NCBI RefSeq assembly: GCF_018977255.1
Contig: NW_024704755.1
Coordinates: 15,376,001-15,440,000, forward strand
Direction: 5' to 3'
Origin: Callorhinchus milii
Taxonomy: Eukaryota
DNA length: 64,000 nt
Every line of letters begins with the position of its first letter. Within the stretch, counting starts at the first letter, position 1. The position numbers and the translations under genes were made by a program. Below are positions 3,801 to 33,349 of this stretch, in pieces. The notes under the pieces are model-generated. The model saw only the letters and a program-made list of their open reading frames with translations, made no database searches and was not told the origin of the DNA.

Positions 3801-4654
3801 AGGAGGGTTATAACTGTTTGAAAGCGTTGCTTAAAACAATTATTGAGCAAATCAACTTCCCACTTTGCTGTGTGGTATAAACCCGCCATCTCCCATCAGT
3901 ACAATAACAAATGGGCAATACTTTAAATGAATTTCGTATTGATAAAAATATTTCAGGTTAAAATAAAATCTTTCGCTGTGTTATGTACGATCACATGGGA
4001 TTAAAAAATGAAACAAACAATTTGCCCAAAACAATTTCAAAATGCTGCAATGTTCGCCTTTCAACATTATTCACATTATCAACTGTATTCACACTTACCA
4101 TGTACAATTAAACGTGATCCAGTTCCATTTGCTGCTATTTTCCCCTGACGGCTCACTGCACAGATATAGACTCCTGAGTCGTGGAAACTCACATTTAGGA
4201 GCTGGAACGTTTTGAAGTTGAATATTTTCCTGTTGTCAGGACTTGTATGTAAATATTCGCGCTCTCCTTGCTTCCACCAGTAAAAGGTTAAATCTGAAGT
4301 GGTCTGAATATTGGCAAACTTGCAGCCGAAGGTAACGCTTTCACCTTCGAATGCTGTCTTGTCTACAGGATATTGGATCACTTTCATAGATGCATCCCCA
4401 GCAACTGTGAGAAAATAAATCAAACCTATAATTGGTGATTATAGAGTTGAAGAAACGTGACAAAATAACTATAGGGAAGGAGGGAGAGAAGGTGGAAGAA
4501 AGAGAATGAGCGAGAAAGATTTATGCATCCACTGAAACATTTTAAAACTCTTCATCAATATTGTTTTGTATTTAAGATCCGCTGTAGTAAAACAATTACC
4601 TGCGAAAATAATCCCCATTAGAGAGAGACAGGGGATCACATCACTCGCCACCAT
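899..4654 (-). CDS. N1: VJ-C1-TM Ig-superfamily receptor (SIRP-like), neutral TM, no cytoplasmic tail
   Basis: Exons, all GT-AG and phase 1: leader 4600-4654 (MVASDVIPCLSLMGIIFA); V 4099-4404 (306 nt; C..W..DSGVYIC..GTGSRLIV); C1 1964-2275 (312 nt; VCKTAAFFPEDITLTW..YTCLVSH); TM 899-1008 (ESDDYPSILLIAGCAGGGLVFLLLLIIIGKECQLKR*), with an in-frame TAG at the exon end. Confidence 0.85.
1580..1950 (+). mobile_element. Older tRNA-headed Deu-domain SINE in the C1-TM intron (orthologous copies ~37632-38010 and ~61400-61775)
   Basis: tRNA-like head (gtagcttagtggttagagc), central gactgtttgtggga..gctgtgc motif, and L2-like tail gctatatcaaatgcaaggattatt. Confidence 0.75.
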
Positions 4655-4747
4655 CGTGATCAGTTGCTGAGACTCACCTCAACATGTTATTGGGTGTAAC
4701 AAACATTTGCTGATTGTCTAATATGAAATAATTCGAAGTGTCATATG

Positions 4748-4756
4748 ACTTCCTGT
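4748..4756 (-). promoter_or_regulatory. Conserved ETS-type motif (ACAGGAAGT) ~95 nt upstream of the leader ATG
   Basis: Same motif at the same spacing before all five main-gene leaders: 4748, 15313, 24780, 40192 and 49600. The upstream DNA is TATA-less. Function is inferred. Confidence 0.5.
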
Positions 4757-4919
4757 CTCCATGGTCAGAGATGAGTGGCATACGATTTGCAAAGAGAATT
4801 GTGCATTTCAGTTGTAACAAGAATCACTCCTCAGCTTAGCAATTTAAAAGGGTTACTTATATCCATATCATTGTCTGGTTTTGTTTTCTGCCTTCTTGCA
4901 TAAATTATTCCTTATCATA

Positions 4920-5460
4920 AGAACATAAGAACCTAAGAAATGGTGGACGAAAATAGACCAAGGTCAATCTAGTTCACCTTCCACCTTCCTGGCGGTCGCA
5001 TGCATATATGTCCCAAACTACCTATGTAGTATATCCCATAATGTTATTTCCTAAACCAAAAACATGTAATCTATGTTTGAAAGAATCAATACTTCCAGCT
5101 TCAACCGTTTCCCTAAGGAGCCAGTTGCATAGGTTAACTATTTGCTTAGTAAATTAGTGTTTGTGTAGATACATTCTGAATTTACACCACTTCAATCGCA
5201 AGCCGTGTCCTTTGATTTTACTATTCTGGGCAAGTTGAAACAACCTGTCATTTATCTATATTGTCTGACAGATTTAGAATCTTAAAGACAACAATTATGT
5301 CACCTCTCAATCTTCTCTTTTCCAGCGTGAACAGGTCCAACTTATTTAGTCACTGCTCACGGTCGAGTTCTTCCATTCCCTCAATCATTTGGTTGCCCTC
5401 CTCTGTTTCTTCTCAATTTCTCCAATATCCTTTTTGGACCTTCCAAACATTCACATTGAT
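4920..5460 (-). mobile_element. CR1-type LINE 3' fragment (related copies ~15480-15960 and ~40565-41070)
   Basis: Reverse strand matches the degenerate CR1 ORF2 C-terminus and 3' UTR seen in the plus-strand copies. Confidence 0.6.
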
Positions 5461-5894
5461 AATACGTACATAATAACGATCGATGTGTCTTTAAAGCTGA
5501 AATACAGAGCTAAATAAGTTACATTCTCTCTAGTTTAACATCAGCTTTTGGCTACACCATGGGACGGCAATCTAATGGAAAGCGCACAGAGAACAAAACG
5601 ATATTTTAATCAAACACAAAGATTTGATGTTTTGAGCAAAGCTGCACAGTTTCCTCTGGAACCTGAGCATTGAATGCATTACCATACTGAATGTCTTTCC
5701 ATATTTTATGTAATGGAAATCAATTAATAAGTACAAAGTTTATGATTTCATTAACAATACATTATGATTTGTCAATAGCAGATTTTTTGTAACAATTTAA
5801 TTGCAGATATTACAGAAACACAAAATAAATGTTTCCATTTTTACAAAGTCAGTTTATCTTCTTTACAAACACTACAATCATACCTTTATAACAT

Positions 5895-6440
5895 ACTGTT
5901 CAGGCCTCAGCTAGACTACTGAGTTTAATTCTGGGCACCATACTTCAGGTTGGATGTCAAGGCTTTGGTGAGTGTGCAAAAGAGATTCGCCAGCATAGAA
6001 CCAGGAATGAGCAACTTCGATTATCAGGAGAGGCTAGAGAAGCTAGGATTATTCTCTCTGGAGCAGAGAAGGTTAAATGGAGACCAGTTATACAAAATTG
6101 TGAGTGGATTCGATAGGGTGAACAAGGAAAAAATATTTCCACTGGCGGCTGGGTCGGTAACCCAAGGACACCGATTTCAAATAGTTGATAAAAGAAACAG
6201 AGTGACGGTGAGGAAATTTTTTTTCACACAGTGAATTGTTCGGATCTGGAATGGTTTGCCTGAAAGAGTGGTGGAAGCCGATTCGATAAAAACTTTTTAG
6301 AGAAATGTAGATAATTATTTGGGGAAGACAAGTTGCAGGGAGTGAGCGGTGAGTGGCGTTGAATTCAAGGGTTCTTTTGAAAGAGCTGGCACAGATATGA
6401 TGAGCCAAAGGCCCTGCTTCTGTGCTGTACAATTCTATGA
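5895..6440 (+). mobile_element. CR1-type LINE 3' fragment (related copies ~16370-16930 and ~41520-42050)
   Basis: YQERLEKLGLFSLEQRRLNGD.. is a typical CR1 ORF2 C-terminal motif; the tail is (ATTCT)-like. Confidence 0.8.
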
Positions 6441-7194
6441 TTGTATGATTCCGTAATACAGAGTGGCGGTGAGGAGAAATTTTGAATAAGTTTGAATGAA
6501 TACAATACCAGAGGTACAGCTGAATTATAGAAATACCTCTGAATAAATAATAATAATCATTTACATATGGTTGATTAGCATCTATTTGCTCACAGCAATG
6601 TCTCATCAACAGATATGAAGTCAATGACCAATTTTCTCTGTAGAAATGCTGATCATGATACCCAGAGGATACACTTCAGTTTAGAAGTAATGTAAAAAGA
6701 TCTACACAGTACACTTGAGCACGCAGCCTGGACTTCGTTCAATATTTCATCTATAAGATAATGATAACTTGCATTCTCATATATTACGACCTTCACATGG
6801 GGAAGCATCTCCGAACATCTCGAACTACACCTACTACAATGCAAACAAACCCATTATGACATTGAAGAGTCAGCCAAGAATATGAGTTTAAAGTCTTGAC
6901 CTTCAGCTTTAACTCAAACCATTTTTTTCAGGTAGATATGTGTTACCAGGTGTCAACTAACAGGAATTTTGATTGCACAGCATTCTCAGCTGTGGATAAT
7001 ATTCTTGGAGAGTGTTTGCCAGCGGTCAGTAGAAGCAAAACATATGTGTGTTTTGGAAGGTTATGCTTTACATCGTTGAAGATTCGCACAAAACATTGTT
7101 TTACAAATTGTGCACAAGCTTGATATCGATATTAGGATTGGGAATTGGGAATCATCATTGTAGTGGAGCCTTTGGTTGAGCAATAGCCACTTAC

Positions 7195-7434
7195 TTGGTA
7201 TTGAAGGCTGATCAAAGATGAGCACATGAGAAACCGTGAATGTTCAATTAGAGTTAAGAAGGGGTTATTTACTTGGTGTTTTCTGAATCACAAAGTGTAT
7301 ACGTAAACTGTACTCGAATAACATGTTTAATGAATGATAGAAATGATGGAGAGGAAGATGTCATTTGTCTCTCTGATGGCAATCACGGATTCCGAGATTA
7401 GTGCTACGTTGAACGAAAAATCACCAGTACCAAC
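7195..7434 (-). pseudogene. Decayed X-type V exon upstream of N1
   Basis: Reverse strand reads GDFSFNVALISESVIAIRETNDIF, which aligns to X-type SVKVIQISDPVAAIRGTHVTF. It ends in a J-like GATCAGCCTTCAATACCAA|gtaagt. It has stops, is about 80 nt shorter than the intact exon, and has lost its acceptor. Confidence 0.65.
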
Positions 7435-7974
7435 CCATCAGAGAAAAAATAAAGACAGATTGGTACATCAAAATACACCGCCCCCCCTCCCCCCAACATA
7501 TGACTCCAATCAGTTTTGGCCCTGATGGTCTGCAATAAGCTGAACTGCAACAAGGCTGCACAAGTGTTTTGTCGAGAAAAAACGTTACTGTGTCATTTGA
7601 CTTCCTGCCTTTGATGGTTCAGGAAATTGAGTTTGTGGTAAAAGTGCAATTTGTAAGGTCACGTAATCACTAACACAATGATGAGATTAACCCAATCCAT
7701 TGGTAGCACATAAAAGATTTAAATATATCCAGCCTTTAAGGCAGAATTCAAGATCACGTTATGGATCTCAGGATGTTGGGGTTAACTAATATCTATTTGG
7801 TGGATCATCTCTTCTTCGGAGAGTTCCATTCAATTATATATAGAAACCAATAGGCAACAACATTATTAGAACTAAACAACCTGCCTAACATCTTCACAAA
7901 TGTCTGCATAATTATATTTTGTCATCTGGGTGTAGAACCCATGCAGAAAACCACGCTTAAGATTCTGCAAAGAG

Positions 7975-8190
7975 GGTGGGAGAGAGGGAGAGTGAGAGAG
8001 AGAAATGGAGAGAGCGAGAGAGTCTGTGTGAGAGAGAGAAAGTGTGTGAGAAAGCGTGAGAGAGAGGGGAAGTAAGTGATTCAGAGGGTGAGAGAGGGAG
8101 AGAGAGAGAGAGCATTGATGGAGAGGTGAAGACAGAGAAACCAAGAAAGTGAGAGAGAGAGAGAGACCAGAGAGAGACCAGAGAGAGAAG
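7975..8190 (+). repeat. Imperfect (GA)n purine-rich microsatellite (related tracts ~19790-19940 and ~43380-43570)
   Basis: Directly visible GA-rich low-complexity sequence. Confidence 0.85.
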
Positions 8191-8559
8191 GCAGTATTTC
8201 TTGTTTCACTGTCAGGACAGATAGATGATCGGAGCCTCTCTCGGCCAACTTGGAGAGACCGAGGACAGACACCGAGGGGACGTGCTGTGCAGTTTCCTTA
8301 CAGAAAGCTGCCTCTTTTCCCAGTGAAAACATCTCAATGTCCATCATCCCACAGCCCCTCCCCATCATATCCCTGCGACCTCTCGACCTGGCTGTTCTAT
8401 CTTCTCAACCATCGCCATTTGCCCCTGATCTCTGGAGCTCCATTTCCGAAATCCCTCCAAATCATTCCCTCTGTCCCCTCTTTTAAGGCACATGAAGAAT
8501 CATTTGACCGTGTTTTTGATCATCCTTTCCTCTCCCAGCCACCCCCATGCCTATATTTG

Positions 8560-9190
8560 TATATCCCCCTAAATAAAAACAGAAGGTGCTGGGAACATTC
8601 AGCAGGTGAGACAGCGTCTATGGAGAAAAGAAAGTAAGTTAGGTCGATTTCAGGTTTCAGGTCGATGACCTTCTCAGAATAGTGGGATGTTGGATGGGAG
8701 CAGTTTATAAGAAAGAACAAAGAAGGGGGCGGGAAAGAAAGACACAGGAAAAAATTAGGTGGAGGACAGTAGATGATGAGATCAGAGGTTTTGATGGTGC
8801 AAGACGAAAGAAGGCAAAAGTGGGAGATTAGAGGAAGGAAGGAAGTGTTTGCCACCCAAAGGATGTTTGATTGGTTTTACAAGAGGGCTGTGGGGAGAGG
8901 GGGAAGGGGAGTCGGGGCAAAGGCTGAGAGAAGATGGGAGCTGAAGTGGTTAAAATCAAAGTTGAGGCCAGAAGGCTGTAATGTGCTGAGGATGTAGATG
9001 TGGTGCTGTTCATCGAGCTTGCATTGTGCTTTGTTGAATTAGCATAGGAGACCATTGACAGAGAGGTCAGAGTGGGAGTGGGAAGGAGAATTAAAGTAGC
9101 AAGCGACAAGAAGGTTAGGGTTGCACTTGCGGACGGAACAGAAATGTTCAGCAAAGCAATTACCCAATTTACGTTTGGTCTCTCCAACGG
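8560..9190 (-). mobile_element. Penelope-like element fragment (GIY-YIG C-terminus plus terminal repeat)
   Basis: Reverse strand reads ACYFNSPSHSHSDLSV..KLDEQHHIYILSTLQPSGLNFDF, resembling the Penelope endonuclease C-terminus. Recognised from memory of the family, not by a search. Confidence 0.6.
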
Positions 9191-9484
9191 GAGACGATGG
9201 AAGCAAAAAGTGTTGTTTGTTTCAAGAACAAATTAGATAGATTTATCATAGATAATAATATTTTGGGATACAGTATATAGATTGGGACACGGCATGTCAA
9301 GCGACTGCAGGATGGAGGGACACTAACTGATGGACCTTGGTCATTGTTGTTGTTACCAACATTACAGGATCAGAAAATAGATCTAAACAGTATTACTCAA
9401 CTCAAATATTGGATGCATTTAATAGATTTCCGCATGTCCAGGGCATTGCTTTCCCCTGGGGCATGGGTAATCAATGATTAACTA

Positions 9485-9880
9485 AAGTACCCATATAGAG
9501 AACTTCAATAGAGGTTTGAAGGTTTTAATAGGGCAGACATAGGGAAGATGTTTCCACTTGTGGGGGAGACCAAAACCAGGGGCCATCGATATAACATCGA
9601 TATAACAAATAGATCAAATAGGGAAGTTAGAAGAAATTTCTTTAAACAGAGAACAGATGGAATTTGGAACATGCTACGACAAGGATTTGTTGAGGCAAAT
9701 AGTATAGATGTATTCAAGGGGAAGCTAGATAGGTACATGAGGGAGAAAGGAATAGAAGGTTATGCTTGAAGGCTCAGTTGATGAAGGGCAGGAGGAGGCT
9801 CATATGAAGCATAAACACCGGCATAGACCAGTTGGGCCGAATGACCTGTTTCTGTGCTGTATATTCTAATGTATTCTAAT
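9485..9880 (+). mobile_element. CR1-type LINE 3' fragment
   Basis: MFPLVGETKTRGHRY..RRNFFKQR..FKGKLDRYM motif with a tattcta-type tail. Confidence 0.8.
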
Positions 9881-11579
9881 GTACCACAATGAACTTCATT
9901 CAACATTTTATTTATTGCAATTCAAAATTATGAAATCAAAGCTGTTATGTTCAATCACATCGCACCATACAGAGAACTTCGATAGAGATTTTAGGTGAGT
10001 GGTTTTACAGATATCACACAAAATTACAATAAAATCTTTATTCTTTGCCAAGCCATAACATCACCCTGACTAAAAAAAAAGCTCTATTTTAACACAACAA
10101 AATGTAATTTATGACACCTGGTGTTCAGGTCTGGGTAGTTCACACATACCAATGAGTACAATGTGAAAACACTTGAAACTTGGGGAATGAAAACTTGACT
10201 CAGTTTTCTGGTGGCAAATTTGAAAGTTTTGCCAATCTGGAAACAAATAACATAATAATCCAGGTTGTTTTTTAAATTAGGCTAAAACAGACAAATGTAT
10301 TATTTTTAAAAAGATAAAAAATGTGAAGCATTAGGCTGGTCCAGTGAAATAATGCAAAAGGAAGATAGATCAAAGAGTAGATGCCTTCTGGATCCTTTTA
10401 TGATGAAGGCTCTATGGCTACTGGTACATAGACTTATTAAAACCATCAACATCATTTTCAGATGCGGTCAGAAAAAAACAAAACTTGATCAACAATTGAT
10501 GTTCAACTGGACTCCAGGATATGTACCGACATTATTTAAAAAACACATTAAGTGTTGCATTTGGTGTATTATATTATATTAGTAATTGTCGGTTAATTGG
10601 AGCCAAATTGACCAAGCTGGTGTACAATATTTTGACCTGGGTTTACGAAGAAAATCTATGAAATTGCTGATATTCAATGGGTGAAAAGCAAATAAGAGGT
10701 GATATTCTAGATATATTCCAAGTCTTAAATGGTATAAATCAAATGCAATCAAATATATTTGATATAGTATACCAGACCGTTATGTAACATCTTCTGTTTC
10801 TTCCAGTCAGTGCATTTCCATCAGCACAATTCAATCACCTCTAAGCGTTTTCTTCCTTACTTCCTCTGTAATGTACATAAATGGATGTGATGGGACAAGA
10901 AATGACAAGATGTATACGCTGTGAAGATATGGCCATTACTGAGGGAAAAGGAAAAGGAGTTGGTAGGATTAGCAAGTTTGCAGGGCTATGGGGAGAGCGC
11001 GGGGAAATGCGATTGATTTGGAAGCTCTTTTCAAAGAGTCGGCACAGACACGATCGGCCGAATGGCCTCCTTCTGTGCTGTATAATTCTGCGATTCTGTG
11101 ATTCAGTAAGAAAACAAGAAGTGCAATTGTGAATATCACAAATCCTTTGATTCTGTGACTCACTGTAATCATTGTTGCGTTCCACGCAAACAAATTGACG
11201 TTTCAATCTGAAATGTTTACAACGAGACTGCAAACGTAACAGGTTTAGCTGATTTTTAAACGGCTGTTAAACACGATTTGCAGTGAGATTAATATATAAT
11301 ATGATAATCATGTAACAGATCTGGTTGCTATTGCACGAATGTATTGTTCAATATTTCCGGATACCTGAAAGTTTGGATTAGATATGTTTATATCCATTGA
11401 TTATAAGAGATTCCGCCAACAGAACAAAAAATAATTTCCGCATTGTAAAGTGTGTTGTCCCTGTAGCAGCGAACAACATGAACCTGTTTCCGTTTCATTG
11501 ATAACTGTATGTGCGACGATATAAACACAATATCTGTCAATGAAAAGTCAATGTTCTTTTAAAACAAAGAATGCTTTAC

Positions 11580-14500
11580 CTTTTATGTGGGTTGATTGTA
11601 AGATAGTCAATAAGAATGATGGTCAACAGTAACACTGCCACAAAGCATAACGTAAAACGGATAATCATCATAACGGACATTCCACCATTATCTGGAAAAC
11701 AAATTACGAAACTATAACATGTTTACATCAAAACTAAATAATCATTCTGTATTGGGAAAATGCACACGTTTTCCTTTTTTTACTGGAACGCTATAAAATG
11801 CGCATTCATTTTCAAATGAAAATAACAGCGAATAGTAGTGAAAATCAACGCGCGGCATTTTATTAGTGATGTTATAGAGACACAATTATATATTGTGTGG
11901 TAACAGTTCCCCATTGACTGTGCGCTCAGCTTCAAATGTACCGATAGAATGTGTGTTCTGACCCGAGCCATATAGAGCCACAGTCACCAAAACTCATTGC
12001 ATTGGAAATGTGCTCTCATCCCGAAAATCTATAAAACATCTCACAAGCGAGTTTTATTTTAATGCAGTGATTGTTGTTATAAAGGAATACGCAACAGAAG
12101 ATTTGCTCCAAATCGTCCTCAGAAAATGGAGTGGATTAATGAACCAATAGTATTTATGTTTCATTTGTGAACGTGTTTCAGTCCAAAAGTCCAATTTCTG
12201 ATGAACGCGCAGGACTATTGCACTTTAGAGAGGTTACTGAATGCCGAAAACGTAAATAACATTTTGAAGGGGAGCTATTCAGAATCTAATAACAAAACAA
12301 GAACATACGCAGATTTGAGATATTGTTCGATTCAAAGACTATACATTTAGAATTGGATTTTTAAAAAAAAATATATGGAGTTTCCAGCGAGAAACTTATA
12401 TGATTATAAATTGTTGCGTAACTAAATGTAAATACAATTTCCAGTAATTGGGTGTTTAACAACAAAAGCACCTTATTACTGGAAGACAATTTAGTCATCC
12501 TACCATAGAATCCTGGGTTTGGTTCAGAAACGGTGAACTTGGCAACTGCTGGAATCCGAAGGCTGATATGAGATACCAGACAGATATAAAGAGCCCCACT
12601 CTGTACAGGCTGTGTCTCTTCCATAGAGCTCCAAACTTTGTAGAGTCCCTTTGAGTTCCTTTCTTTTGTGGAGTTTATCCCAGTTTTAACTTCATTGCCA
12701 TCTTTACTCCAAATGAGCTTTATATCTTCTGGGTAAAACGCAGCCGTTTCACACACAAGTGTCGGAGGTGTTGATGAATCTGTTTCAGAATCTCTGGGGA
12801 ATATCTTCAGTGGGGTTGGGGGGACTGGAGGGCAGAAAATGGAGGAGAATCACATTACTGGTGATCAGTTGGAACATATAATTTGATTTCTATTTGAATT
12901 GTATGTAAATTGTTTCCTTGGAACATTATAACAAATAAGGCCCTCCGAGTCGCTACCCCACGTGAAGGGCCATATTGAAAGATGCTGTTGTCATAACAAG
13001 GGATCTGGATTGTAACTGAAGAAGCTGATCCTGTTCGGGTCTTCAATTTTGGAACAATGTTTAGGGTACGAAACGTTAAAAGGTGGAGGCGGTCCTGTCA
13101 CTATTCAGCAGATTAATAGTTGGATACAAGGATTTAACTATGACCAGAAGATGGCTAAACCTGATTTACATTTGATAGATCTGAGAAAGATGGGAGGTAA
13201 TTTGATTCAGGTATGAATGAATGATAGCATATTGCAGGCGCATCGTTCCAGTAAAGAAATAAAAATAGGAGACACGATCCTAACATTTTGGCTAAACCTG
13301 TTAGACGTGACATGAAACCGTCCAGTCCGCATGCAATACTATGATATTATGGAATCCCCTCCCAAGTGGCCTGGATGCAGATTGAAGTGGGATATTTAAA
13401 AAGAAAAAAGCTAAACATTTTAAGGGGCTGGAAAGTGGTGGCGAAATTGGGTTAAATGTTACGCCAGCATTCTCGAACAACAACTGAGATTTCACCTTCA
13501 TTAAAGATAATACCAAAACATCCCCATTAATAACAACATTCATTTTGTTCTGCTGTGTTTCTTCAAATTTAAATTTCAAACCAACTTACCATAATTAGAA
13601 TAGGTAATTCAAAATCATTTCATGACGACTGATGGGACATTGTTGTATGGAAATTGGTGCAAATGGTCCGAGTGTTTTTAAATATCTGCCTTTCATATAA
13701 ATCAGTAAATTGCAAATGTCTGGACCATAGGTGCAAGAGATTCTGATTCTGATTATCATCATTATTAGTAGTAGCAGTGTTATTAGCATTATTGTTAATA
13801 TTATTATTAGTAATATTATTGTTGTGTTAGCAATGATGGTATGGTAATAATAATTGTAATATTAATAAGACTTGCATTCGCCTTTTGTGTCGAGATGATG
13901 CCTCAAAGCATTTGATAGGATTCAATGTAAGAAAGGAGCGATTTTGTAGGAGAACACAGCAGCCAATTTTGCACACACCAATGTGCCACAAATAGTCATG
14001 AAGTGAAAAACCAACTCTATCTGGTGGAGTCGTCTGCCGGACAGGGGGGAAAGAGTCTCTCTTCTGGTTTCGAAAAGAACCACGAGATCGTTAACATCAC
14101 CTGAACATGCAGGAGGGACCTCGGCTTAGCGCCTCGTTCACATAGGGAGAACCTCAAGCAATAGAGCAATGTAAAGGTCTGGACTATAGTACAAGAGATT
14201 CTGATTAATAAAAATGATGATTCAACCTCAAGCCATAGAGCGCGTTCCTAACATTGCTTTTGATTGTGTGCGCTGTGATCTTCATGTTTTGACGTGGGAC
14301 AATCTGATAAATGCTTTCAGCACAGAATAAAATACCGAATAGCGTTACTATTATGCTTGCGTCGGTAGGAGGGATATAATTGTTTCAAAGCATTGCTTAA
14401 AACAATTATTAATCAACTCAAATCCCCACTTTGCTGTGTGGTATAAACCCGCCATCTACCATCAGTACAATAACAAATGGGCAATACTTTAGATGAATTT

Positions 14501-15219
14501 CGTATTGATAAAAATATTTCAGGTTAAAACAGAATCTTTCGCTGTGTTATGTACGATCACATGGGATTAAAAAATGAAACAAACAATTTGCCCAAAACAA
14601 TTTCAAAATGCCGCAATGTTCGCCTTTCAACATTATTCACATTATCAACTGTATTCACACTTACCATGTACAATTAAACGTGATCCAGTTCCATTTGCTG
14701 CTATTTTCCCCTGACGGCTCACTGCACAGAGATAGACTCCTGAGTCGTGGAAACTCACATTTAGGAGCTGGAATGATTTGAAATCGAATATTTTCCTGTT
14801 GTCAGGACTTGTATGTAAATATTCGCGCTCTCCTCGCTTCCACCAGTAAAAGGTTAAATCTGAAGTGGTCTGAATATCGGTAAACTTGCATCCGAAGGTA
14901 ATGCTTTCACCTTGATTTGCTATCTGTTCTACAGGATATTGGATCACTTTCATCGATGCATCTCCAGCAACTGTGAGAAAATAAATCAAACCTATAATTG
15001 GTGATTGTAGAGTTGAAGAAACGTGACAAAATAACTATAGGGAAAAAGGGAAAAAAGGTGGAAGAAGAGAAAGAGCGAGAAAGATTTATGCATTCACTGA
15101 AACATTTTGAAACTCTTCATCAATATCGTTTTGTATTTAAGATCCGCTGTAGTAAAACAATTACCTGCGAAAATAATCCCCATCAGAGAAAGACAGGGGA
15201 ACACATCACTCGCCACCAT
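11580..15219 (-). CDS. A2: VJ-C1-TM receptor with Arg in the TM (putative activating); final short tail exon unresolved
   Basis: Leader 15165-15219; V 14665-14970; C1 12504-12824 (321 nt); TM 11580-11691 (DNGGMSVMMIIRFTLCFVAVLLLTIILIDYLTINPHK, ends in phase 2). All junctions GT-AG and in frame. Confidence 0.85.
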
Positions 15220-16964
15220 CGTGATCAGTTGCTGAGACTCACCTCAACATGTTATTGGGTGTAACAAACATTTACTGATTGTCTAATATTAAATAATTTG
15301 CAGTGTCATGTGACTTCCTGTCTCCATGGTCAGAGATGAGTGAGATACGATTTGCAAAGAGAATTGTGCCTTTCAATTGTAACTGGAATCACTTCTCAGA
15401 TCGGTAGCAAAGAGAAGGGGTGCATATATCCATATTATTCTCCGGTTTTGTTTTTAGTTCTTGCATTAATTCTTCCTTATCATAAGAACATGAGAAACTA
15501 GGAACACAAGATCCTGGCGGTCGCATTCATATATGTGGCAAACTACCTATGTACTATATCTCATAGTGCTATTTCCTAAAAGAAAAGTATCTAATCTGTG
15601 TTTGAAAGAATCAATACTTCCAGCTTCAACTGTCTGACTAAGACACAGTTCCACAGTTTCACTATTCGCTCAGTGAAATAGTGTTCATATAGATTCGTTC
15701 TGAATTTACCCTCCTTCAATTGCAAGCTGTTTTCTGTCTTTTTACTATTCTGGACAAATTGAAACAGCCTGTCCTGATCTATCTTGTCTAACCCCTTTAT
15801 AATCTTAAAGACAGCAATCATGTCACCTATTTTTCAGCATGAACATGCCCAACTTACTTAGTTGCTCCTCATAGTTCAGTCCTTCCATTCCCTCAATCAT
15901 TTTGGTTGCCCTCCTCTGTATCTTCTCAATTCATCCAATATCATTTTTGGAGCTTCAAAACATTCACATTTATGATTTGTATATAACAGCTAAGGAAGCT
16001 ACATTCTCTCCAGTTTAACATCAGCTTTAGGCTACACCATGGGACGGCAATTTAGTGGAAAGCGGACGGAGAATCAAGCAGAATGTTTTGATTTATTTAA
16101 TGTTCTGAGCCATAGTTTAATGTTTCTTCTGGAACCTGAGTAATTGATCATTGAATGCATTACCCTATTGAATATCTTTCCATATTTTGTTCAATGGAAA
16201 TCAATATAATGAGTACAAAGTTTATGATTTCATTAACAGTAGATTATATTTTGTCAATAGCAGATTTTTTGTAACATTTTAATATTAATATTAATATTAC
16301 AGAAACACAAAATAAATGTTTCCACTTTTACAAAGTCAGTGTATCTTTCTTACAAACTCTACAATCATAGCTTTATAAAACACTGGTTAGGCCTCAGCTG
16401 GAGTACTGTGTTCAGTTCTGGACACTACGTTTTCGGAAGGATGTGAAGACATCGGAGATGGTGCAAAGAAGATTTACCTGGATGGTACCAGGAATGAGGG
16501 CCTTCAGTTATCAGGAGAGGCTAGATAAGCTAGGATTATTCTCCTTGGAGTATAGAAGGTTAAGAGGAGTCGTAATGGAAGTTTTCAAAATTATGAGAGG
16601 GTTCGATAGGGTGAACAGTGAGAAACTATTTCCACTGGCGGCTGGGTCGGTAACTTGATGATACGGATTTAAAATAGTTGTTAAAAGAAACAGAGGGGAG
16701 GTGAGGCAAATATCTTTCACACAATGGAATGCATTGCCTAAAATGGTGGTTGAAGCCAATTTGATATCAACTTATAAGAGAGATATAGATAATTATTTGG
16801 GGAAGATAAGTCGTGAGGACTATGGGGAGAGCGCGGGGGAGTGGCATTGAATTGGATAGCTCATTTCAAAGAGTGGCACAGACATGATGGGCCTAATGAC
16901 CTCCTTCTGTGATGTATAATTCTAAGATTGTAGGATTCTTAGATACAGAGTTTCTTTCAATGAA

Positions 16965-17905
16965 TACAACAAAAAGATTACATTTGTATAGCATCTTTCA
17001 CGTCGAGAGGACGTCCCAAAGCACTGGACAGTGTACAGCATTTCAGACCCGAGCTGGGGTCAAGGGGGAGAAGGGAGGGGAGGGGAAGGGGGGTGACCAA
17101 TGGCATGGTTGAAGAGGAGGGTTTTGAGGTGGGAATTGAAAGAGGCTAAGGAGGGGGCGAGGTGGAGTGATGGAGTTCCAGAGGTTGGGGGCAAAGTGGC
17201 TGAAGGCTCTCCTGCCAATGGTGGGGTGGGTTGTTCGGGGGTCTTGCAGCAGGCCGGTGCCGGCTGAGGGGAGGGAGCAGGCAGGTTGGTAGGGGCTTAG
17301 GAGGTCACAGAGAGAGGCGGGGTGAGACCATTGGGGGTTTGTAGGTGAGGACCAGGATTTTGAACTGGATCCTCTGAAGGATAGGGAGCCAATGGAGTCG
17401 GGCAAGAATGGGGGAGATGGGGTCAGGGAGTTTGGTGCAGGAGAGGACATCGACTGCAGAGTTCTGGATTATCTGCAGTCTGTGGAGGGAGGAGTTGGGA
17501 AGGTCAACAAGCAGGGCATTTGCATAGGGGGCAAATAGAGTTTCAGCGGCCTGAGGGTGAGATAGTGGCGGAGTTGGGCGATGTTAAGGAGGTGAGAGAA
17601 GGCAGAGCAGATCATGGTTTGGATGTGGGGAAGAAAAGACAGTTGAGGGTCGAACAAGACACCTCGGTTCCTGACTGGCTTGGTGATTTGAAGTGTGCAA
17701 TCATGGAGGTTGATGCTGCCAGAGCCTGAGGTGCAGAGGTGCGAGCGCAAGCCAATCAGGACGGCCTCAGTCGTATTCACATTCAACTGTAGGAAGTTTG
17801 CCCTCATCCAGGACTTCATGTCCGACAGACAGTCTGTCAGGACAGCAGTGATCCTGGAGTTGAAGGTGGAAGCAGAAAGATAGAGTTGGGTGTCATCCGC
17901 ATACA
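16965..17905 (-). mobile_element. L2-type LINE 3' fragment (RT YADD and downstream)
   Basis: MYMYADDTQLYLS..WMRANFLQLN and GRRAFSHFAPNLWNS motifs, with frameshifts. Confidence 0.85.
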
Positions 17906-18453
17906 TATACAATACAATAACAGTGGTACAGCTGAATTATAGAAATATCTCTAAATAAATAATAATCATTTACGTGCTTGATTTGCATCTATTTGCCCAC
18001 AGCAATGTCTCATAAACAGGAATGAAGTCAACGACCAATTTTCTCCAGGGAAATGTTGGTCATGATACCTAGAGGACCCACTTCAATTTAGTAGTAATGC
18101 AAAAAGACCTTCAACTAACACCTGAACATGCATCCTGACCTCATTCAATGCTTCATCTATAAATAATACTAACAACTTGCATACACACATACTACGACCT
18201 TCACATGGGAAGCAACTCCGAGCATCTCGAACTACACCTACGACAATGAAGAGCAAACCCATTATGACATTGGAGCATCAACCTTGAACATGAGTTTAAG
18301 TCTGGACCTTCGGTTTGAACTCAAACTGACCTTTTCAGGTAGATACGTATTACCAGGTGTCAAGTATCAGGAATTTTGATTGCACAGCATTCTCAATAAT
18401 GGATAATGTTCATGGAGAGTGTTTCGTCAGTAGAAACAAAACATATGTATGTT

Positions 18454-18585
18454 CTGACGAAGGGTCGTGGACCCAAAACGTTGACTCACTTTCCTTTCTC
18501 TATAGCTGCTGCCTGACCTGCTGAGTTTTCCCAGCTCTCTCTATTTTTGTTTCAGATTCCAGTATCTGCAGTGTTTTGTGTTTTG
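18454..18585 (+). mobile_element. Short Penelope-like terminal-repeat insertion with a 15-bp target duplication
   Basis: AAACATATGTATGTT at 18439-18453 and 18586-18600 flanks the insert. Absent from the paralogous positions near 7040 and 25870. Confidence 0.7.
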
Positions 18586-18742
18586 AAACATATGTATGTT
18601 TTGGAGGGTTAGGCTTTACATCGCTGAGGTTCTGTACAAAACATTGTTTTACACATTGTGCACAAGCTTGATGTTGATATTAGGATTGTGAATTGGGAAT
18701 CATCATTGAAGTGGAGCCTTGGGTTGAGCAATAGCCACTTAC

Positions 18743-18985
18743 TTGGCATTTAAGGCTGATTGACAATGAGCACATGAGAAACCGTGAATGTTCAATTAGA
18801 GTTAAGAAGGGGTTATTTTCTTGCTGTTTTCTGAATCACATATAAATAGTATAAATAAACTGGATTCGGATAATGTGTTTAATGAAGGAAAGTAATGATG
18901 TATAGGAAGGTGATGTTTGTCCGTCTGATGGCATTCACTCATTCTGCGATAAGTGTTACTTTGACTGAAAAATCATCAGTACTAC
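18743..18985 (-). pseudogene. Decayed X-type V exon upstream of A2
   Basis: Reads DDFSVKVTLIAE*VNAIRRTNITF versus DASVKVTQIPDPVAAIRGTHVTF in X5. The acceptor tctgatag and the gtaagt donor are retained; there is an in-frame stop. Confidence 0.7.
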
Positions 18986-21961
18986 CTATCAGAACAAATA
19001 ACAAGGAGAGATTAATACATTACAATACCAGCTTGCCCCTCAGCACAATGATTCCGATCAGTTTTGACCCTGACGGTATTTAATAAGCTGATCTGCAACA
19101 AATGATTTGCTGACAAAAATGTTTCTGTGTCATTTGACTTTGACAAACAAAAGCATTGGCGGTTTGCCAGTCTGCCCCCAACCTCTGGAACTTCATCCTC
19201 CAATCACTCCGCCTCGCTCCCTCCTTAGCCTCCTTCAAGTCCCGTCCCAAAACCCTCCTCTTCAACCATGCCATGGGTCACCCCCCCTTCCGCTCCCCTC
19301 CCTTCTCCCCCCTGACCCCAGCTCAGGTCTGAAATGCTGTGCACTGTCCAGCACCTTGGAACGTCCTCACAGCGTGAAAGGCGCTAAACAAATGTAATCT
19401 TGTTGTTGTTGACTTCCTATCTTTGAGGGATCAGTACATTTAGTTGGTGGAGAAAGAGCAACTTGTAAGGATACGTGATCACTAACCCTATGATGAGATT
19501 AACCCCATCCATCTTTAGCACATAAAAGATTTAAATTAATCCAGCCTTTAAACGTAATTCAAGGTCACGTTGTGGATCTCGGGATACTGAGTTTAACTGA
19601 TACCTTTTGGTGGATCATCTCTTCTTCGGAGAGTTCCATTCAATTATATATAGAAATCAATAAGCAACAAAATTATGAGAACCAAACAACCAGCCTAACA
19701 TCTTCACGGATATCTGCGTAATTATACTTTGTCATCCGGGTGTCGAACCCACACAGAAAACCACGCTTAAGATTCTGCCAAGAGGGTTGGAGAGAATGGG
19801 AGTGAGAGAGAGAAATGGAGAGAGAGTGAGAGTGGGTGAGAGAGGTATAGAGAGTGTGTAAGAACGCGTGAGAGAGAAGAGGGAGAGAAAGTGATTCAGA
19901 GGGCGAGAGAGAGCATGATAGAGAGGTGGGGACAGAGAAAAAAGTTAAGTGGAGGACAGTAGATGATGAGATCAGAGATTTTGATGGTGCAAGATAAAAG
20001 ATAGCAATAGTGGGAGATTCGAGAAAGAAAAGATGCTTCTGCCACCGAGAGGATGTGTGAGTGGTTACACAAGAGGAGGAGGGCCGAGGCAAGGCTGAGA
20101 GGAGATGGGAGTGTTGTTTGTTTCAAGAACAAATCAGATAGATAATAATATCTCAGGATACAGTATATAGTTTGGGACATGGTATGTCAGGCGGCTGCCA
20201 GGAAAGAGGAATGCGAACTGATAGACCTTGGTTTTCTTTTGCCTCGCAAATTCATATGCTTTTGTGTTCTTAAGTTGTTGTTGTTACCAACTTTGTGGGA
20301 TCAGAAAATAAATCTAAACAGTACTTCTCAACTCAAAGATTGGATGCATTTAATAGATTTCTGCATGTCCCAGACATTGCGTTCCCCGGAGGCATGGAAC
20401 AATCAATGAACTACCATTATGAAATTCATTGAACATTTTATTTATTGCAATTCAAAATGTTGAAATAAAATCTGTTATGTTCAATTACAATCCAAAATAC
20501 AGGGAACTTCGATAGAGATTTTAGGCGAGTGGTATTACAGGTATCAGAAAAATACAATAAAACGTATATTATTTGCAAAGCCATAACCATCACACACACT
20601 AAAAAAAAGCTCTATTTTAACACAATAAAATATGTAATGTATGACATCTGGCGATCAAGTCTCGGTAGCTCAAACATGCCACTGAGTGCAATATAAAATA
20701 TCTTGAAACTTGTGGTAGAATGAAAACTTGACTCAGTTTTCTAGTGCCAAATTTGACAGATAACAATTTTGCCAACCTTGAAACAAACAACATAATAATC
20801 CGGGTTGTTATTGAAATTACGATAAAACAGACACATTTTTTACTTTTAAAAAGCTGAAAAGTGTGAAGTGCTTCGGCTGCCCAGTGAAATAAAGCAAAAG
20901 GAATATTGATCAAAAAGCTGACGCTTTCTGGGTCATTGTGTGGCGAAGGCTCTGTGGCTAATGGTACATAGATTTATTAACACCATCAACATCATTTTCG
21001 GTGACAGTCAGAAAAAGCAAAACTTGATCGACAATTCATGTACAACTGGACTCCGGGATACGCCTCGAAATTATTTAAAAACACTATATTCGCTGCGCTT
21101 GGTGTATTGCATTATATTAGTAATTGTCGGTTCATTGGAGCCAAATTGACCAAGCTGATGTATATTATTTTGACCTGGGTTTTTCGAAGAAAATCTGTGA
21201 AACTGCTGATATTTAACGGGTGAAAAAGAAATAAGAGGTGATTTTCCAGATATATTCCGACTCCTAAATGGTATAACTCAAACGCATTCAAATATATTTT
21301 ATACAGTATACTGCTCATAATTTATAATCTTCTGTTCTTCCAGTCCGTGTATTCCATTAGCATAATTGAATCACCTCAATCGTTTCTTCCTCACTTCATC
21401 TATAACAAAACAAGTAGTGTAATCGTGAATATCACCAATCCTTTGATTCTATGATCAATTGTAATAATTGCTGATTTTCACCAAACAAATTGATGATTCA
21501 TTCTGCAATGTTTACAACGAGACTGGAACCGTTACTCGTTTAGTTTAATTTTAAACGGTAATTAAACATATTCGGACAACACGATTTGCAGTGAGATCGC
21601 CTTTTACGTTGGAAGGACGTCTGAAAGCGCTTGGCTGTGTTTGTGGGGCTCCGGAGCTGGAGACGGAATCCGAAGTATTGCATATGACCCAAACCCAACC
21701 ATGTAACACGGATCTGGTTGCTATTGCACGAATGTATTGTTCAATATTTCCGGATACCTGAAAGTTTGGATTAGATATGTTTATATCCATTGATTATTAG
21801 AGATTCCGCCAACAGAACAAAAAGTAATTTCCGCATTGTAAAGTGTGTTGTCCCTGTAGCAGCGAACAACCTGAACCTGTCCCCCTTTCATTGATAACTG
21901 TATGTGCGACGATATTTGTCAATGAAAAGTCAATGCTCTTTTAAAGCAAAGAATGTTTTAC

Positions 21962-24685: not shown

Positions 24686-25571
24686 CGTGATCAGTTGCTG
24701 AGACTCACCATCAACATGTTATTGGGTGTAACAAACATTTGCTGATTGTCTAATATGAAATAATTCGCAGTGTCATATGACTTCCTGTCTCCATGGTCAG
24801 AGATGAGTGACATACGATTTGCAAAGAGAATTGTGCCTTTCAATTGTAACTGGAATCAGTCCTCAGATCGGCAATCAAGAAGAAGGCAAATATATTCATA
24901 TTATTGTCTGTTTTTTTCTGTGTTCTTGTAATAATTCTCCATTTTCAGTCCCCGTATTCACATTGATAATTAGTATATAATAAAAAATTATATGTCTTTA
25001 TAGTTGATGTAGAAACCTAATGAAGCTGCATTCGCTCCAGTTTAGCATCAGTTTTAGGCTACACCATGGAACGGCAATCTAAGTGAAAGCACACAGAGAA
25101 CCAAATGATCTTTGAATCAAACACAAATGTTTGATTTATCTAATGTTCTGAGCTAAGGTACAATGGTTTCTCTTGAACCTAAGCCTTTAATCAATCAATA
25201 TATTACCATATTGAATGTAGTTCCATATTTTATTGAATGCAATTCAATATAATGAATACAAAGCATATCTGGATGATTTTTTAGTAACAATTTAACAATA
25301 GATATTACAGAAATGCCAAATAAATGCTTCTATTTTTACAAAATCAATTTATCTTCTTCACAAACACTACAATCATACAGAATCTCTTTCCTTTACAGGA
25401 TAATAATCCTTTACATGTGATTTATTTGCACGTATTTGCACGCAGTAGTGTCCCATAAATAGATATGAAGTGAATGACTAATTTTCTCTGAGAATTGTTG
25501 GTCATGATACTCAGAGGACCCATTTCAACTGAGGAATGATACTAAGAGATCTTTAACCTACCCCTGAACAG

Positions 25572-27109: not shown

Positions 27110-27459
27110 GTCTGTCTCTGGCGGACATTTATACGAGTGACAGAGAACTCTACTTTTCAACGTCTACTATTGATTTCCAGATCTTCTGTCACAAGTGACC
27201 GTGGATTATTTGGTACAGAGTAGGTCGCTGTGACACTGACTTTGTTTCTTTGGGTTCGTGAAATGTTGCAGGTGTGCAGAATGCAATTCGAAATCACACT
27301 TTTACATCAAAATTGTAAAAATAGTAACCCATCCTGTGAAGATCAGAAAACAAGCTGAGCGTATCTAAACTTAAAACACACACCGTTCAGCGTCATTAAT
27401 AGTTTATGGTGCTTTCTACAACTGGAAATGTTGATTTGAGCACTAACTCGTGGAATAAG

Positions 27460-33171: not shown

Positions 33172-33177
33172 TTTATT
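33172..33177 (-). terminator. Candidate polyadenylation signal AATAAA of I4 (paralogous site 58199-58204 for I6)
   Basis: About 175 nt after the I4 stop codon; conserved in both inhibitory copies. Confidence 0.4.
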
Positions 33178-33349
33178 GAGAGGTTGATTGAACATGTTAC
33201 ACAACAGTTCCATTCGTTTGAACTCTGGTTTTAGTTTTGCAGCAGTTAAAGAGCTATTTTCTGGCAACACAGGAATAATATGCACAATGTTCACTTTGGT
33301 GGAAAACAACACCTAATATACACCAATATCAGTTTCTGAGCCTGTTTCA

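Follow-up and report, generated by a model that had tools for sequence, protein, structure and literature searches.

Paired activating and inhibitory receptors are a recurrent answer to pathogen pressure, and their history before the bony fishes is poorly charted. NKp46, LILRA, GPVI, and OSCAR are FcR-gamma-coupled receptors with an N-terminal Arg in the transmembrane (TM) segment, and in FcaRI, NKp46, GPVI, and LILRA2 an acidic residue lies exactly 17 positions past this Arg. Multigene clusters that combine ITIM-bearing and charged-TM members are formed by teleost NITR, LITR, and DICP and by skate MDIR genes, whose products have V or V/I, or C2-type, domains. Partners of Fc-gamma carry Arg at about TM position 3, type I partners of DAP12 carry Lys near position 9, and assembly drops about six-fold when R and K are exchanged; the N-terminal Arg of FcaRI gives no assembly with DAP12, which prefers a central Lys in type I receptors, and rodent DAP12 pairs with Arg in Ly49 (PMC1440944). 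SIRP-beta is described as coupling to DAP12 (PMC12975943), while NKp30 uses a TM charge interaction with CD3-zeta (PMC12272517) and is presented as an ancient family that sharks also have (Kinlein 2021, as cited in PMC12272517). In macaques, activating KIR3DS is described as an inhibitory-type ectodomain recombined with a 3' segment encoding a TM Arg, and as coupling to FcR-gamma rather than DAP12 (PMC8102735).

The 64-kb window, the whole stretch of DNA analyzed here, holds a cluster of antibody-like V-C1 receptor genes of Callorhinchus milii. Three of these genes (A, B, and C) have a TM exon with an Arg and a predicted short tail, and two (D and F) have an uncharged TM followed by ITIM exons. 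We conclude that A, B, and C are probably activating members of a paired, non-rearranging, antibody-like V-C1 family, with an adaptor most likely of the CD3-zeta/FcR-gamma type.

Gene structures and the Arg-encoding exon

All features described below lie on the minus strand. In gene A, a leader exon (MVASDVFPCLSLMGIIFA, 15165-15219) is followed by a VJ-type V exon (14665-14970; Pfam V-set/ig), a C1-set exon (12504-12824; PF07654, E 4.9e-15), and a 3' cassette (11306-12503) that comprises the C1-TM intron, the Arg exon, and the 3' flank; at ~94% identity this cassette is shared with B and C, and the 3' parts of the inhibitory genes bear no relation to it. Leader, V, and C1 exons of gene B occupy 24631-24685, 24131-24436, and 22861-23181, and those of gene C 49451-49505, 48951-49256, and 46787-47107. 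When leader, V, C1, and Arg exons were joined, each of the three genes gave an intact ORF of 267 aa in which all splice sites were canonical. No further Ig ORF was found in the 0.8-kb C1-TM intron, which leaves a single C1 exon between V and TM.

The Arg exons, each of 112 nt, are located at 11580-11691 (gene A, ..VMMIIRFTLCFVAVLLLTIILIDYLTINPHK), 21962-22073 (gene B, ..VMMIIRFMLCFVAVLLLTIIIVDYLTINPHK), and 45888-45999 (gene C). All three are bordered by canonical ag/gt sites, with an acceptor ending in ttttccag and a donor starting with gtaaa, are entered in phase 1 and left in phase 2, and have one open frame, with stops in the other two. Where it meets the preceding C1 exon, whose donor is in phase 1, this frame gives a GAT (Asp) codon. 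The consensus peptide of the three exons is (D)NGGM(S/P)VMMIIRF(T/M)LCFVAVLLLTII(LI/IV)DYLTINPHK; the gene A exon encodes NGGMSVMMIIRFTLCFVAVLLLTIILIDYLTINPHK, those of B and C, which are identical in DNA, encode NGGMPVMMIIRFMLCFVAVLLLTIIIVDYLTINPHK, and the Arg codon is CGT in each. Splice sites, phase, and the single open frame agree with the positions that the preliminary description had given for these exons, all of which were correct.

Pfam and AlphaFold indicated a type I layout of leader, V-set, C1-set, and C-terminal helix. The AlphaFold model (mean pLDDT 79) places V at residues 27-121, C1 at 127-218, and the helix at 232-260, with the Arg as its predicted eighth residue. In the best 19-residue Kyte-Doolittle window (score 2.99) the Arg occupies position 3. 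Both analyses agree with the earlier proposal of a hydrophobic stretch whose Arg lies toward the extracellular side. The Arg lies in the outer third of the helix, and an Asp at the cytoplasmic boundary follows exactly 17 positions later. Seven fairly hydrophobic residues precede the Arg in C. milii, and 2-5 hydrophobic residues do so in elasmobranch homologs.

Beyond the boundary Asp, the tail would measure 9-11 residues in its two likeliest endings, or at most 12 aa, and would hold no conserved signalling motif. One ending uses a terminal mini-exon that encodes SYQ-stop, for which candidates were found at 11495-11504 in gene A (..S-Y-Q-stop; implied intron just 75 nt), 21888-21897 in gene B (implied intron 64 nt), and 45803-45812 in gene C. 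The tail had been called ambiguous, with one acceptor giving ..PHKSYQ*; this acceptor is present in all three copies (11504, 21897, and 45812), and read-through of the TM donor would alternatively give ..PHKR*. A scan for a longer tail exon returned several candidate acceptors downstream, none of which added an ITIM or ITAM.

The inhibitory genes differ from A, B, and C at their 3' ends. Gene D has an uncharged TM exon (..LPYALIAGCAGGGLAFLLLLIIIGKQWQLSKKKG, 36924-37064) and three cytoplasmic exons (34543-34590, 34049-34156, and 33353-33526; together 33353-34590) with the ITIMs VAYVTL and LTYAAL and the motif TEYAEL. Gene F, whose V exon lies past the window end, has a C1 exon at 61794-62105, an uncharged TM exon at 60694-60834, and cytoplasmic ITIM exons at 59712-59759, 59219-59326, and 58553-58729 (together 58553-59759) that match P0007 at 100%. 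A tblastn search with the ITIM tails of the inhibitory paralogs matched the window only at 33353-34590 and 58553-59759, behind D and F, and gave no match in 4654-11580, 15219-21962, or 40097-45888, which bears out the absence of ITIM exons downstream of the Arg exons that had been noted earlier. A segment of gene F at 61556-61642, picked up by tblastn with the Gln-variant module of P0030, was rejected as a relic Arg-type exon: it contains stops and no hydrophobic stretch.

Paralogs, elasmobranch homologs, and gene models

Between gene A and genes B/C the Arg exon is 95.5% identical, the flanking introns are 94% identical, and four of the five exonic substitutions are non-synonymous; B and C themselves represent one segmental duplication (95-98% identical). 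Because the introns are conserved about as well as the exon and B/C is one recent duplication, conservation in three copies proves little. The earlier observation that the exon is conserved in three genes holds as a statement of shared sequence and fails as a sign of constraint.

The paralogs revealed a different pattern. At the amino acid level the V domain of A is 90% identical to that of inhibitory gene D and 88% to that of gene E, which has an uncharged TM (dS about 0.10), but just 66% identical to that of B/C (dS 0.47), whereas in the 3' cassette A matches B/C at 94-95.5% identity. Homology of A to the inhibitory genes D and F stops at 12512, 8 bp from the C1 donor. Judged from these comparisons, gene A is a mosaic of a D-like V domain and the Arg cassette common to B/C, and on the same footing it represents the classic paired-receptor pattern. 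Activating and inhibitory genes with close ectodomains and opposite signalling ends are interleaved within the 64 kb.

Six elasmobranch species (Heterodontus francisci, Heptranchias perlo, Scyliorhinus canicula, Carcharodon carcharias, Chiloscyllium punctatum, and C. plagiosum) have V-C1 proteins with an R-x16-[D/E]-H module in the same place. In the aligned modules of seven species the acidic residue is present in 9/9, the Arg in 8/9 (the exception being a Gln in Heptranchias P0030), and the spacing is invariant. Elasmobranch modules share 6-11 of 19 residues with the C. milii core in fixed register, as against 4-6 of 19 for uncharged TMs of the V-C1 family in the best of any register. When 35-aa elasmobranch TM modules were searched against the window in six frames, the best matches were exactly the three Arg exons, with the gene A exon as top match and E values of 8.5e-6 to 7e-4 for three of the queries; a PDB search with the TM-module profile returned chance matches only. 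By these sequence comparisons the Arg exon is real beyond chance, and it is conservation across species, not among paralogs, that supports it. The two polar residues and the spacing of the cassette are common to chimaeras and sharks, lineages that split roughly 420 My ago (PMC6238376).

The same conservation bears on whether A, B, and C signal at all. They might, like SIRP-gamma, be non-signalling decoys or adhesion molecules anchored in the membrane, with Arg and Asp snorkeling to the interfaces around a short, 16-residue core; the Arg-Asp distance of 17 positions, close to one bilayer core, with a short hydrophobic core between, and the Gln tolerated at the Arg position in one ortholog would suit such anchors. 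An Arg outside and an Asp inside, however, run contrary to the positive-inside rule for a type I protein, the R-x16-acid geometry also occurs in FcR-gamma-dependent receptors, and it is activating partners that usually show a dedicated 3' cassette in place of an ITIM tail. Passive anchoring would, moreover, be an odd reason for conservation across roughly 420 My (PMC6238376), and we consider a decoy role unlikely.

A juxtamembrane [I/V]-D-Y-L-T-I in genes A, B, and C, which the preliminary description had overlooked, formally fits the ITIM consensus [ILVS]xYxx[ILV]. Were it a working ITIM, the receptors would be inhibitory or, like KIR2DL4, of dual function, and an ITIM-like VGYDAL does close the modeled tail of one elasmobranch homolog (C. 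punctatum P0047). The Tyr in C. milii, however, abuts the membrane, adjoining the boundary Asp inside the helix predicted by AlphaFold, and its position is taken by His in 7/7 elasmobranch modules, so that the Tyr is not the conserved feature. We therefore give a functional ITIM at this site next to no credence.

The Arg exon had also been described as unannotated. This does not apply to gene B, which corresponds to UniProt A0A4W3H622 (P0002): the C-terminus of this entry matches the gene B exon exactly and ends in PHKR. It does apply to A and C, for which an exact-sequence look-up of the built models found no public full-length model with the exon. The exon was likewise absent from all NCBI C. 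milii gene models retrieved. Models P0005 and P0008 stop just after C1 (..GFYGRMTKLSSS), in P0006 a B-like V-C1 is followed by an uncharged TM and ITIMs, and P0001 spans two genes. Automated names of the cluster genes are SIRP-beta1-like or PTPNS1-like; NCBI applies NCR3-like to one V-TM isoform (P0011), which has an uncharged TM with ITIMs.

These models raise the question whether the exon is used. NCBI and some Ensembl models (P0005, P0008, P0006, and P0001) propose ends that would follow from read-through after C1, giving a secreted V-C1 protein, or from splicing to inhibitory exons of neighboring genes, and the look-up result for A and C points the same way. Against this stand an ideal acceptor, donor, and phase in all three genes, the presence of the exon in one Ensembl-derived model, and the inclusion of the homologous module in RefSeq models of six elasmobranch species; the exon-skipping models are, in addition, visibly chimeric across genes. 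An unused Arg exon is thus very unlikely, and secreted isoforms could coexist with the membrane form. Omission of the exon from the retrieved NCBI C. milii models leaves the putative activating genes mislabeled as inhibitory, secreted, or fused.

Candidate adaptors of the putative activating receptors

Inhibitory genes D and F present ectodomains near-identical to those of A, B, and C above an uncharged TM and ITIM exons, and in A, B, and C all sequence after the C1 exon is swapped for a cassette of ~1.2 kb with a single coding exon. In the scheme proposed here, the Arg may be neutralized within the bilayer by the Asp pair of an ITAM adaptor dimer linked by a disulphide, a pairing presumably needed for surface expression. 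Ligand binding would then signal through the adaptor ITAMs to Syk/ZAP-70 and oppose the ITIM signal of the paired inhibitory receptors.

An adaptor of the CD3-zeta/FcR-gamma type, rather than DAP12, is the most likely partner and the best inference from the analysis: it is favored because the basic residue is an Arg and lies N-proximal in the helix. A profile of the shark TM modules scored 8-11 bits on TMs of human FcR-gamma-coupled receptors and at most 0.8 bits on those of DAP12-coupled receptors, a weak test that serves as a lead only.

CD3-zeta is chiefly a T-cell gene. Its expression is documented for catshark and nurse shark (PMC10768021), the elephant shark has annotated CD3 genes (PMC6795676), and a survey of 2014 found no FcR-gamma in cartilaginous fish (PMC4016189). 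In our protein searches for FcR-gamma, made with human FcR-gamma and a six-species alignment, the best 120 matches listed came from tetrapods and a bichir; PF11628, the Pfam family of zeta/FcR-gamma TMs, came up in these searches. With FcR-gamma reported absent and CD3-zeta present, only CD3-zeta is a documented candidate adaptor. A literature search for a SIRP-like V-C1 family in sharks or elephant shark, or for shark FCER1G or TYROBP, found nothing relevant.

Activating receptors that instead pair with an adaptor of the DAP12 or DAP10 type are improbable, although several observations speak for them. The rules on basic residues derive from mammals, the Ly49 Arg pairs with rodent DAP12 (PMC1440944), FcR-gamma was missing from cartilaginous fish in the 2014 survey (PMC4016189), and the C. 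milii Arg, with seven fairly hydrophobic residues before it, could lie deeper than position 3. However, type I partners of DAP12 favor a central Lys and the FcaRI Arg does not assemble with DAP12 (PMC1440944), merely 2-5 hydrophobic residues precede the Arg in elasmobranch homologs, and the profile scores, weak as that test is, set FcR-gamma-coupled above DAP12-coupled TMs.

The preliminary description had regarded coupling to a CD3-zeta/FcR-gamma-type adaptor as a convergent route to activation. That wording presumes SIRP orthology and is not supported: there is one C1 domain, not two, and in sequence and fold likeness to antibody light chains equals likeness to SIRP-alpha. Convergence and descent from an old shared module would account equally well for the R-x16-acid geometry, and homology to the TMs of FcR-gamma-coupled receptors cannot be proven over a hydrophobic segment of 20 residues. 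As a tentative and rather doubtful reading, R-x16-[D/E]-H may be an adaptor-docking module of the chimaera-shark ancestor, homologous to, and not convergent with, the tetrapod R-x16-E of FcaRI, NKp46, GPVI, and LILRA. If so, FcR-gamma/zeta-type coupling of innate Ig-like receptors would date to the base of the jawed vertebrates, and cartilaginous fish would have either an overlooked FcR-gamma-like gene or CD3-zeta outside T cells. The locus opens to direct test which ITAM adaptor innate Ig-like receptors relied on at that stage, with FcR-gamma reported missing.

Comparison with known receptor families

The Arg module is genuine and ancient, but it belongs to a well-known kind, that of activating receptors signalling via a partner chain, and the C. 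milii cluster shows this kind clearly in a cartilaginous fish, with an activating cassette that is defined and portable. None of the NITR, LITR, DICP, and MDIR families has, to our knowledge, been described as V-C1 with R-x16-D-H. UrIg/UrIg2 is excluded as the family of the C. milii genes by its many C1 domains (PMC12227049), and the shark NCR3 family by being V-only.

With SIRP the cluster shares a non-rearranging VJ-type V followed by C1-set sequence, clustered genes with near-identical ectodomains and opposite tails, and several ITIM-type tyrosines in inhibitory members. SIRP-alpha (2wng) was the best non-antibody PDB match (E 2e-16), but in phmmer and Foldseek searches against PDB antibody light chains scored equal to or above SIRP for the C. 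milii ectodomain and were its best structural matches; such generic antibody-like V-C1 matches are not decisive between SIRP and another family. SIRP differs in having two C1 domains after V where the C. milii genes have one, and the activating C. milii form has an N-proximal Arg, not a central Lys, so that DAP12 coupling as in SIRP-beta is not expected. NKp30 (NCR3) likewise has a non-rearranging VJ-type V domain but lacks a C1 domain, and its human TM scored -1.4 bits on the shark TM profile.

The activating end resembles that of other receptors. FcaRI combines one Arg near TM position 3 with a short tail (PMC1440944), whereas the ectodomains of FcR-gamma-coupled receptors differ in consisting of leukocyte receptor complex Ig domains of C2/I type and not V-C1. 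The macaque KIR3DS/KIR2DL4 cassette belongs to another family, with other domain types and in another lineage, and KIR2DL4 keeps an ITIM in its tail, but gene A has the same mosaic pattern.

Arginine exon and gene cluster

Self-BLAST showed that the 64-kb window (39.6% G+C, zero N) is a tandem array of related minus-strand genes, in the 5' to 3' order F, a lone V exon, C, D, a second lone V exon, B, A and E. A transmembrane (TM) exon with an intramembrane Arg, claimed in the preliminary description for three of these genes, was confirmed on the minus strand at 11580-11691 (gene A), 21962-22073 (gene B) and 45888-45999 (gene C). Each copy is a 112-nt exon with a single open frame (ttttccag/AT AAT GGT ... 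CAT AAA AG/gtaaa). It opens in phase 1 and the upstream C1 exon closes in phase 1 (..TATG/gtagga in A, ..GATG/gtagga in B and C), so that an Asp codon is created at the junction. In all three genes, leader, V, C1 and Arg exons formed an intact ORF with canonical splice signals at every junction. Pfam identified C1-set (E 4.9e-15) and V-set/ig domains in the spliced model, and AlphaFold (mean pLDDT 79) predicted a pair of Ig domains followed by a short stalk of low confidence and a single helix (232-260). The best 19-residue hydrophobic window was IIRFMLCFVAVLLLTIIIV, with the Arg at position 3.

Matches of the spliced model, comprising the Arg exon and upstream exons, were restricted to cartilaginous-fish proteins. 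The top matches were all from Callorhinchus milii (elephant shark; 62-90% identity) and carried conflicting automated names (SIRP-beta1-like, PTPNS1-like, Ig lambda-like and NCR3-like). By sequence, the closest solved structures were antibody chains, with SIRP-alpha (2wng, E 2e-16) among them; by fold, antibody light chains ranked first. UrIg/UrIg2, which have many C1 domains, and the V-only shark NCR3 family were rejected as identities of the V-C1 family. Literature searches found no paper describing this family.

The Arg exon had been called unannotated, which does not hold for gene B: the Ensembl-derived UniProt entry A0A4W3H622 (retrieved as P0002) reproduces its V and TM exons exactly and its C1 exon with one residue difference, and ends in ..PHKR. 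For the retrieved NCBI models of C. milii the description stands, as they skip the exon and stop after C1, place an ITIM tail behind a B-type V-C1, or merge two genes. RefSeq models of six elasmobranch species contain the homologous module. Exact-match look-up in a 15-billion-protein collection returned no entry identical to our models of the three genes (A, B and C). Automated models of the locus (P0001, P0005, P0006, P0008 and P0011) were chimeric or truncated, with mutually inconsistent product names: XP_007902905 continues from gene A's C1 into gene E (V and C1), P0006 couples a B-type V-C1 with an ITIM tail, and P0011, named NCR3-like, skips the C1 exon.

Two candidate endings were found for the Arg-type receptors. 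Read-through, as in the Ensembl-derived model, leaves 9 residues after the Asp (..YLTINPHKR*), while an acag/ acceptor leaves 11 (..YLTINPHKSYQ*). The latter acceptor, proposed earlier, is conserved in all three copies (11504, 21897 and 45812), with an implied intron of just 64-75 nt; further acceptors downstream add neither an ITIM nor an ITAM. The segment [I/V]-D-Y-L-T-I formally matches the ITIM consensus. Because its Tyr is part of the predicted helix and all elasmobranch modules have His instead, it was judged unlikely to act as an ITIM; what is conserved at the boundary is D-H/Y rather than a phosphotyrosine motif. In one Chiloscyllium punctatum homologue (P0047/P0162), the modelled tail after the Arg-type TM is 41 residues long and ends in ..PVGYDAL, which matches the ITIM consensus; this could reflect a dual receptor resembling KIR2DL4 or an artefact of the gene model.

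The lone V exons (26563-26910 and 51268-51615, minus strand; ..VKVIQISDPVAAIRGTHVTFHCNFPFPQGSSGVKVQWDK..RLTVC), one per copy of a segmental duplication, end in phase 1 and are each preceded by a leader-like ORF (e.g. MVSVVFLYLSALHIISTG near 51800), with no C1 or TM exon of their own ahead of the next gene's leader. They might serve genes B and C as alternative first V exons or as an additional N-terminal V, or else be relics. Intergenic space consists mostly of interspersed repeats duplicated together with the genes (27663-33262 versus 52695-58289, plus scattered ORFs, e.g. 35807-36169 and 16371-16655 on the plus strand), including reverse-transcriptase-like ORFs (..GSVLGPQLFMIYINDLDE..) and the motif ..LFPLVGETKTRGH....

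Conservation of the TM module

Conservation across the three genes, on which the initial argument had relied, carries no weight. Genes B and C lie in one 95-98% identical segmental duplication (20939-35416 versus 44856-60603) and their Arg exons are identical. Between A and B/C, the exon has five substitutions in its 112 positions (95.5% identity, versus 94% for the flanking introns), and four of the five alter the amino acid, conservatively. The C1 exons of B (22861-23181) and C (46787-47107) differ at 13 of 321 nt, 10 of them non-synonymous (dN/dS about 1), versus only 5 of 787 nt in the adjoining intron (Fisher p = 1.6e-4), a pattern suggestive of either a gene-conversion tract or diversifying selection within C1. 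Between A (12504-12824) and B/C, the C1 exon is 85% and the C1-TM intron 94% identical; this greater divergence of ectodomain exons than of introns fits a mosaic or gene-conversion history of the cluster rather than simple duplication.

With the gene B protein as query, a full HMMER scan of 1.84 billion representatives retrieved V-C1 homologues bearing the same module at their C-terminus in six elasmobranch species: Heterodontus francisci (VFPRFILSVLVLLLLTIIIMDHF), Scyliorhinus canicula (IVIPRLVLGFLIILGLLGIIVDHV), Carcharodon carcharias (THRFILAFLVILILTTIIVEHL), Chiloscyllium punctatum (LIYRSILGILVIIILAVIIFDHV), Heptranchias perlo (MIVRLLMAFLVILALTAIIVDHV) and Chiloscyllium plagiosum (NIFRLILGIVVMVLGTAFIVDHL). 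Across nine modules from seven species, the Arg was present in eight, the acidic residue in all nine, and the 16-residue spacing was constant; the exception is P0030, another Heptranchias protein, where Gln substitutes for the Arg. With this variant left out, Arg was the sole invariant column of the eight-row alignment. The Asp/Glu 17 positions after the Arg marks the cytoplasmic end; ahead of the Arg, C. milii has five to seven more apolar residues (M-S/P-V-M-M-I-I), versus two to five in elasmobranchs. In fixed register, the C. milii core shared 6-11 of 19 residues with elasmobranch cores, versus at best 4-6 of 19, in any register, with 17 uncharged TMs of the same family. In tblastn searches with the modules of four elasmobranch proteins, the top window matches fell exactly at the three Arg exons (E values 8.5e-6, 2.8e-4, 7e-4 and a weak 0.17). 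Since the module is common to chimaeras and elasmobranchs, which diverged about 420 My ago (PMC6238376), both it and its two polar residues are old and constrained. We regard this cross-species conservation as the decisive evidence that the Arg exon exceeds chance.

Further V-C1 homologues (P0027, from Hypanus sabinus; P0049, from Mobula hypostoma; P0035, P0038 and P0087) carry a second kind of Arg-bearing TM (ILRCAMG.., LLISRCAWGG.., VIYRSTAG.., ICRSIGGG..). It resembles a Gly-to-Arg version of the inhibitory-type TM (LISGCAGG..), is followed by K/R-rich tails, and may represent a separate way of acquiring a charged TM within the same family.

Predicted adaptor coupling

Assembly of activating receptors with dimeric signalling modules is mediated by a single basic TM residue and paired TM Asp residues (PMC1440944). 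In Fc-gamma partners the basic residue, where present, is always Arg and lies in the N-terminal part of the TM (position 3 in FcaRI), with the Fc-gamma Asp at position 6, whereas type I DAP12 partners have a Lys near position 9; R/K exchange lowers assembly to about 15% and FcaRI does not assemble with DAP12 (PMC1440944). Binding of NKp30 to CD3-zeta is likewise a TM charge interaction (PMC12272517). When these rules are applied to the shark module, the type and N-terminal position of its Arg predict that it would dock a zeta/gamma-type partner.

The adaptor side is the weak link of this proposal. A 2014 genome survey did not find FcR-gamma in cartilaginous fish (PMC4016189), and the best 120 matches listed in our FcR-gamma searches were from tetrapods and one bichir only. 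Expression of CD3Z is documented for catshark and nurse shark (PMC10768021), and elephant shark has annotated CD3 genes (PMC6795676).

When human TM sequences were scored with a profile built from the shark modules, NKp46, FcaRI and GPVI reached 8-11 bits, LILRA2 and OSCAR 1.5-1.8 bits, DAP12-coupled K-type TMs at most 0.8 bits and SIRP-alpha -1.1 bits. Human FcaRI, NKp46, GPVI and LILRA2 have an acidic residue exactly 17 positions past the TM Arg. These observations fit a docking geometry common to the shark module and FcR-gamma-coupled TMs, by descent or convergence, and offer a lead rather than a statistical demonstration.

Paired receptors and cassette exchange

Pairing of an ITIM receptor with a charged-TM activating partner is a textbook principle; the main interest of the Arg cassette lies in its age and in the question of which adaptor it uses. 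The inhibitory paralogues combine an uncharged TM (LPYALIAGCAGGGLAFLLLL..) with tails that contain VAYVTL, LTYAAL and TEYAEL. On the minus strand, gene D comprises a leader (40044-40097), V and C1 exons, an uncharged TM (36924-37064) and ITIM exons (34590-33353); gene F comprises a C1 exon (61794-62105), an uncharged TM (60694-60834) and ITIM exons (59759-58553), its V exon lying past the window end. In agreement with the earlier claim that ITIM exons are absent downstream of the Arg exons, tblastn with the inhibitory tails matched only behind D and F, and detected no ITIM exon in the stretch from each Arg exon to the leader of the following gene.

Gene E, also on the minus strand, has a leader (4601-4654), V (4100-4432), C1 (1965-2276) and an uncharged-TM exon copy within 880-1060 (..LLIAGCAGGGLVFLLLLIIIGKECQLKR*). 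This copy is 4 nt shorter than that of gene D, so that a TAG falls at the donor and the exon would terminate the protein without an ITIM tail. The UniRef model for gene E (P0004) has a different TM (..HYALIAGGAAGGLVFLLL..), which is absent from the window.

SIRP-alpha and SIRP-beta form an inhibitory/activating pair, and the elephant-shark family would work likewise; SIRPs, however, have two C1 domains and, in the activating member, a central TM Lys, in contrast to one C1 domain and an Arg in the elephant-shark family.

Gene A has a mosaic structure: its V domain shares 90% amino-acid identity with D and 88% with E (dS about 0.10), versus only 66% with B/C (dS 0.47), while from the C1 donor onwards it is 94-95.5% identical to B/C. 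At the nucleotide level, A is homologous to the inhibitory genes D and F only as far as 12512, 8 bp from its C1 donor (12504), and the sequences are unrelated beyond. A D/E-like V combined with a B/C-like 3' part thus indicates that a 3' cassette of roughly 1.2 kb (11306-12503 in A) was joined to an inhibitory-type ligand-binding domain. Macaque activating KIR, in which a KIR3D gene was joined to the Arg-bearing 3' part of KIR2DL4 (PMC8102735), are built in the same way, from an inhibitory-type ectodomain and an Arg-bearing 3' segment.
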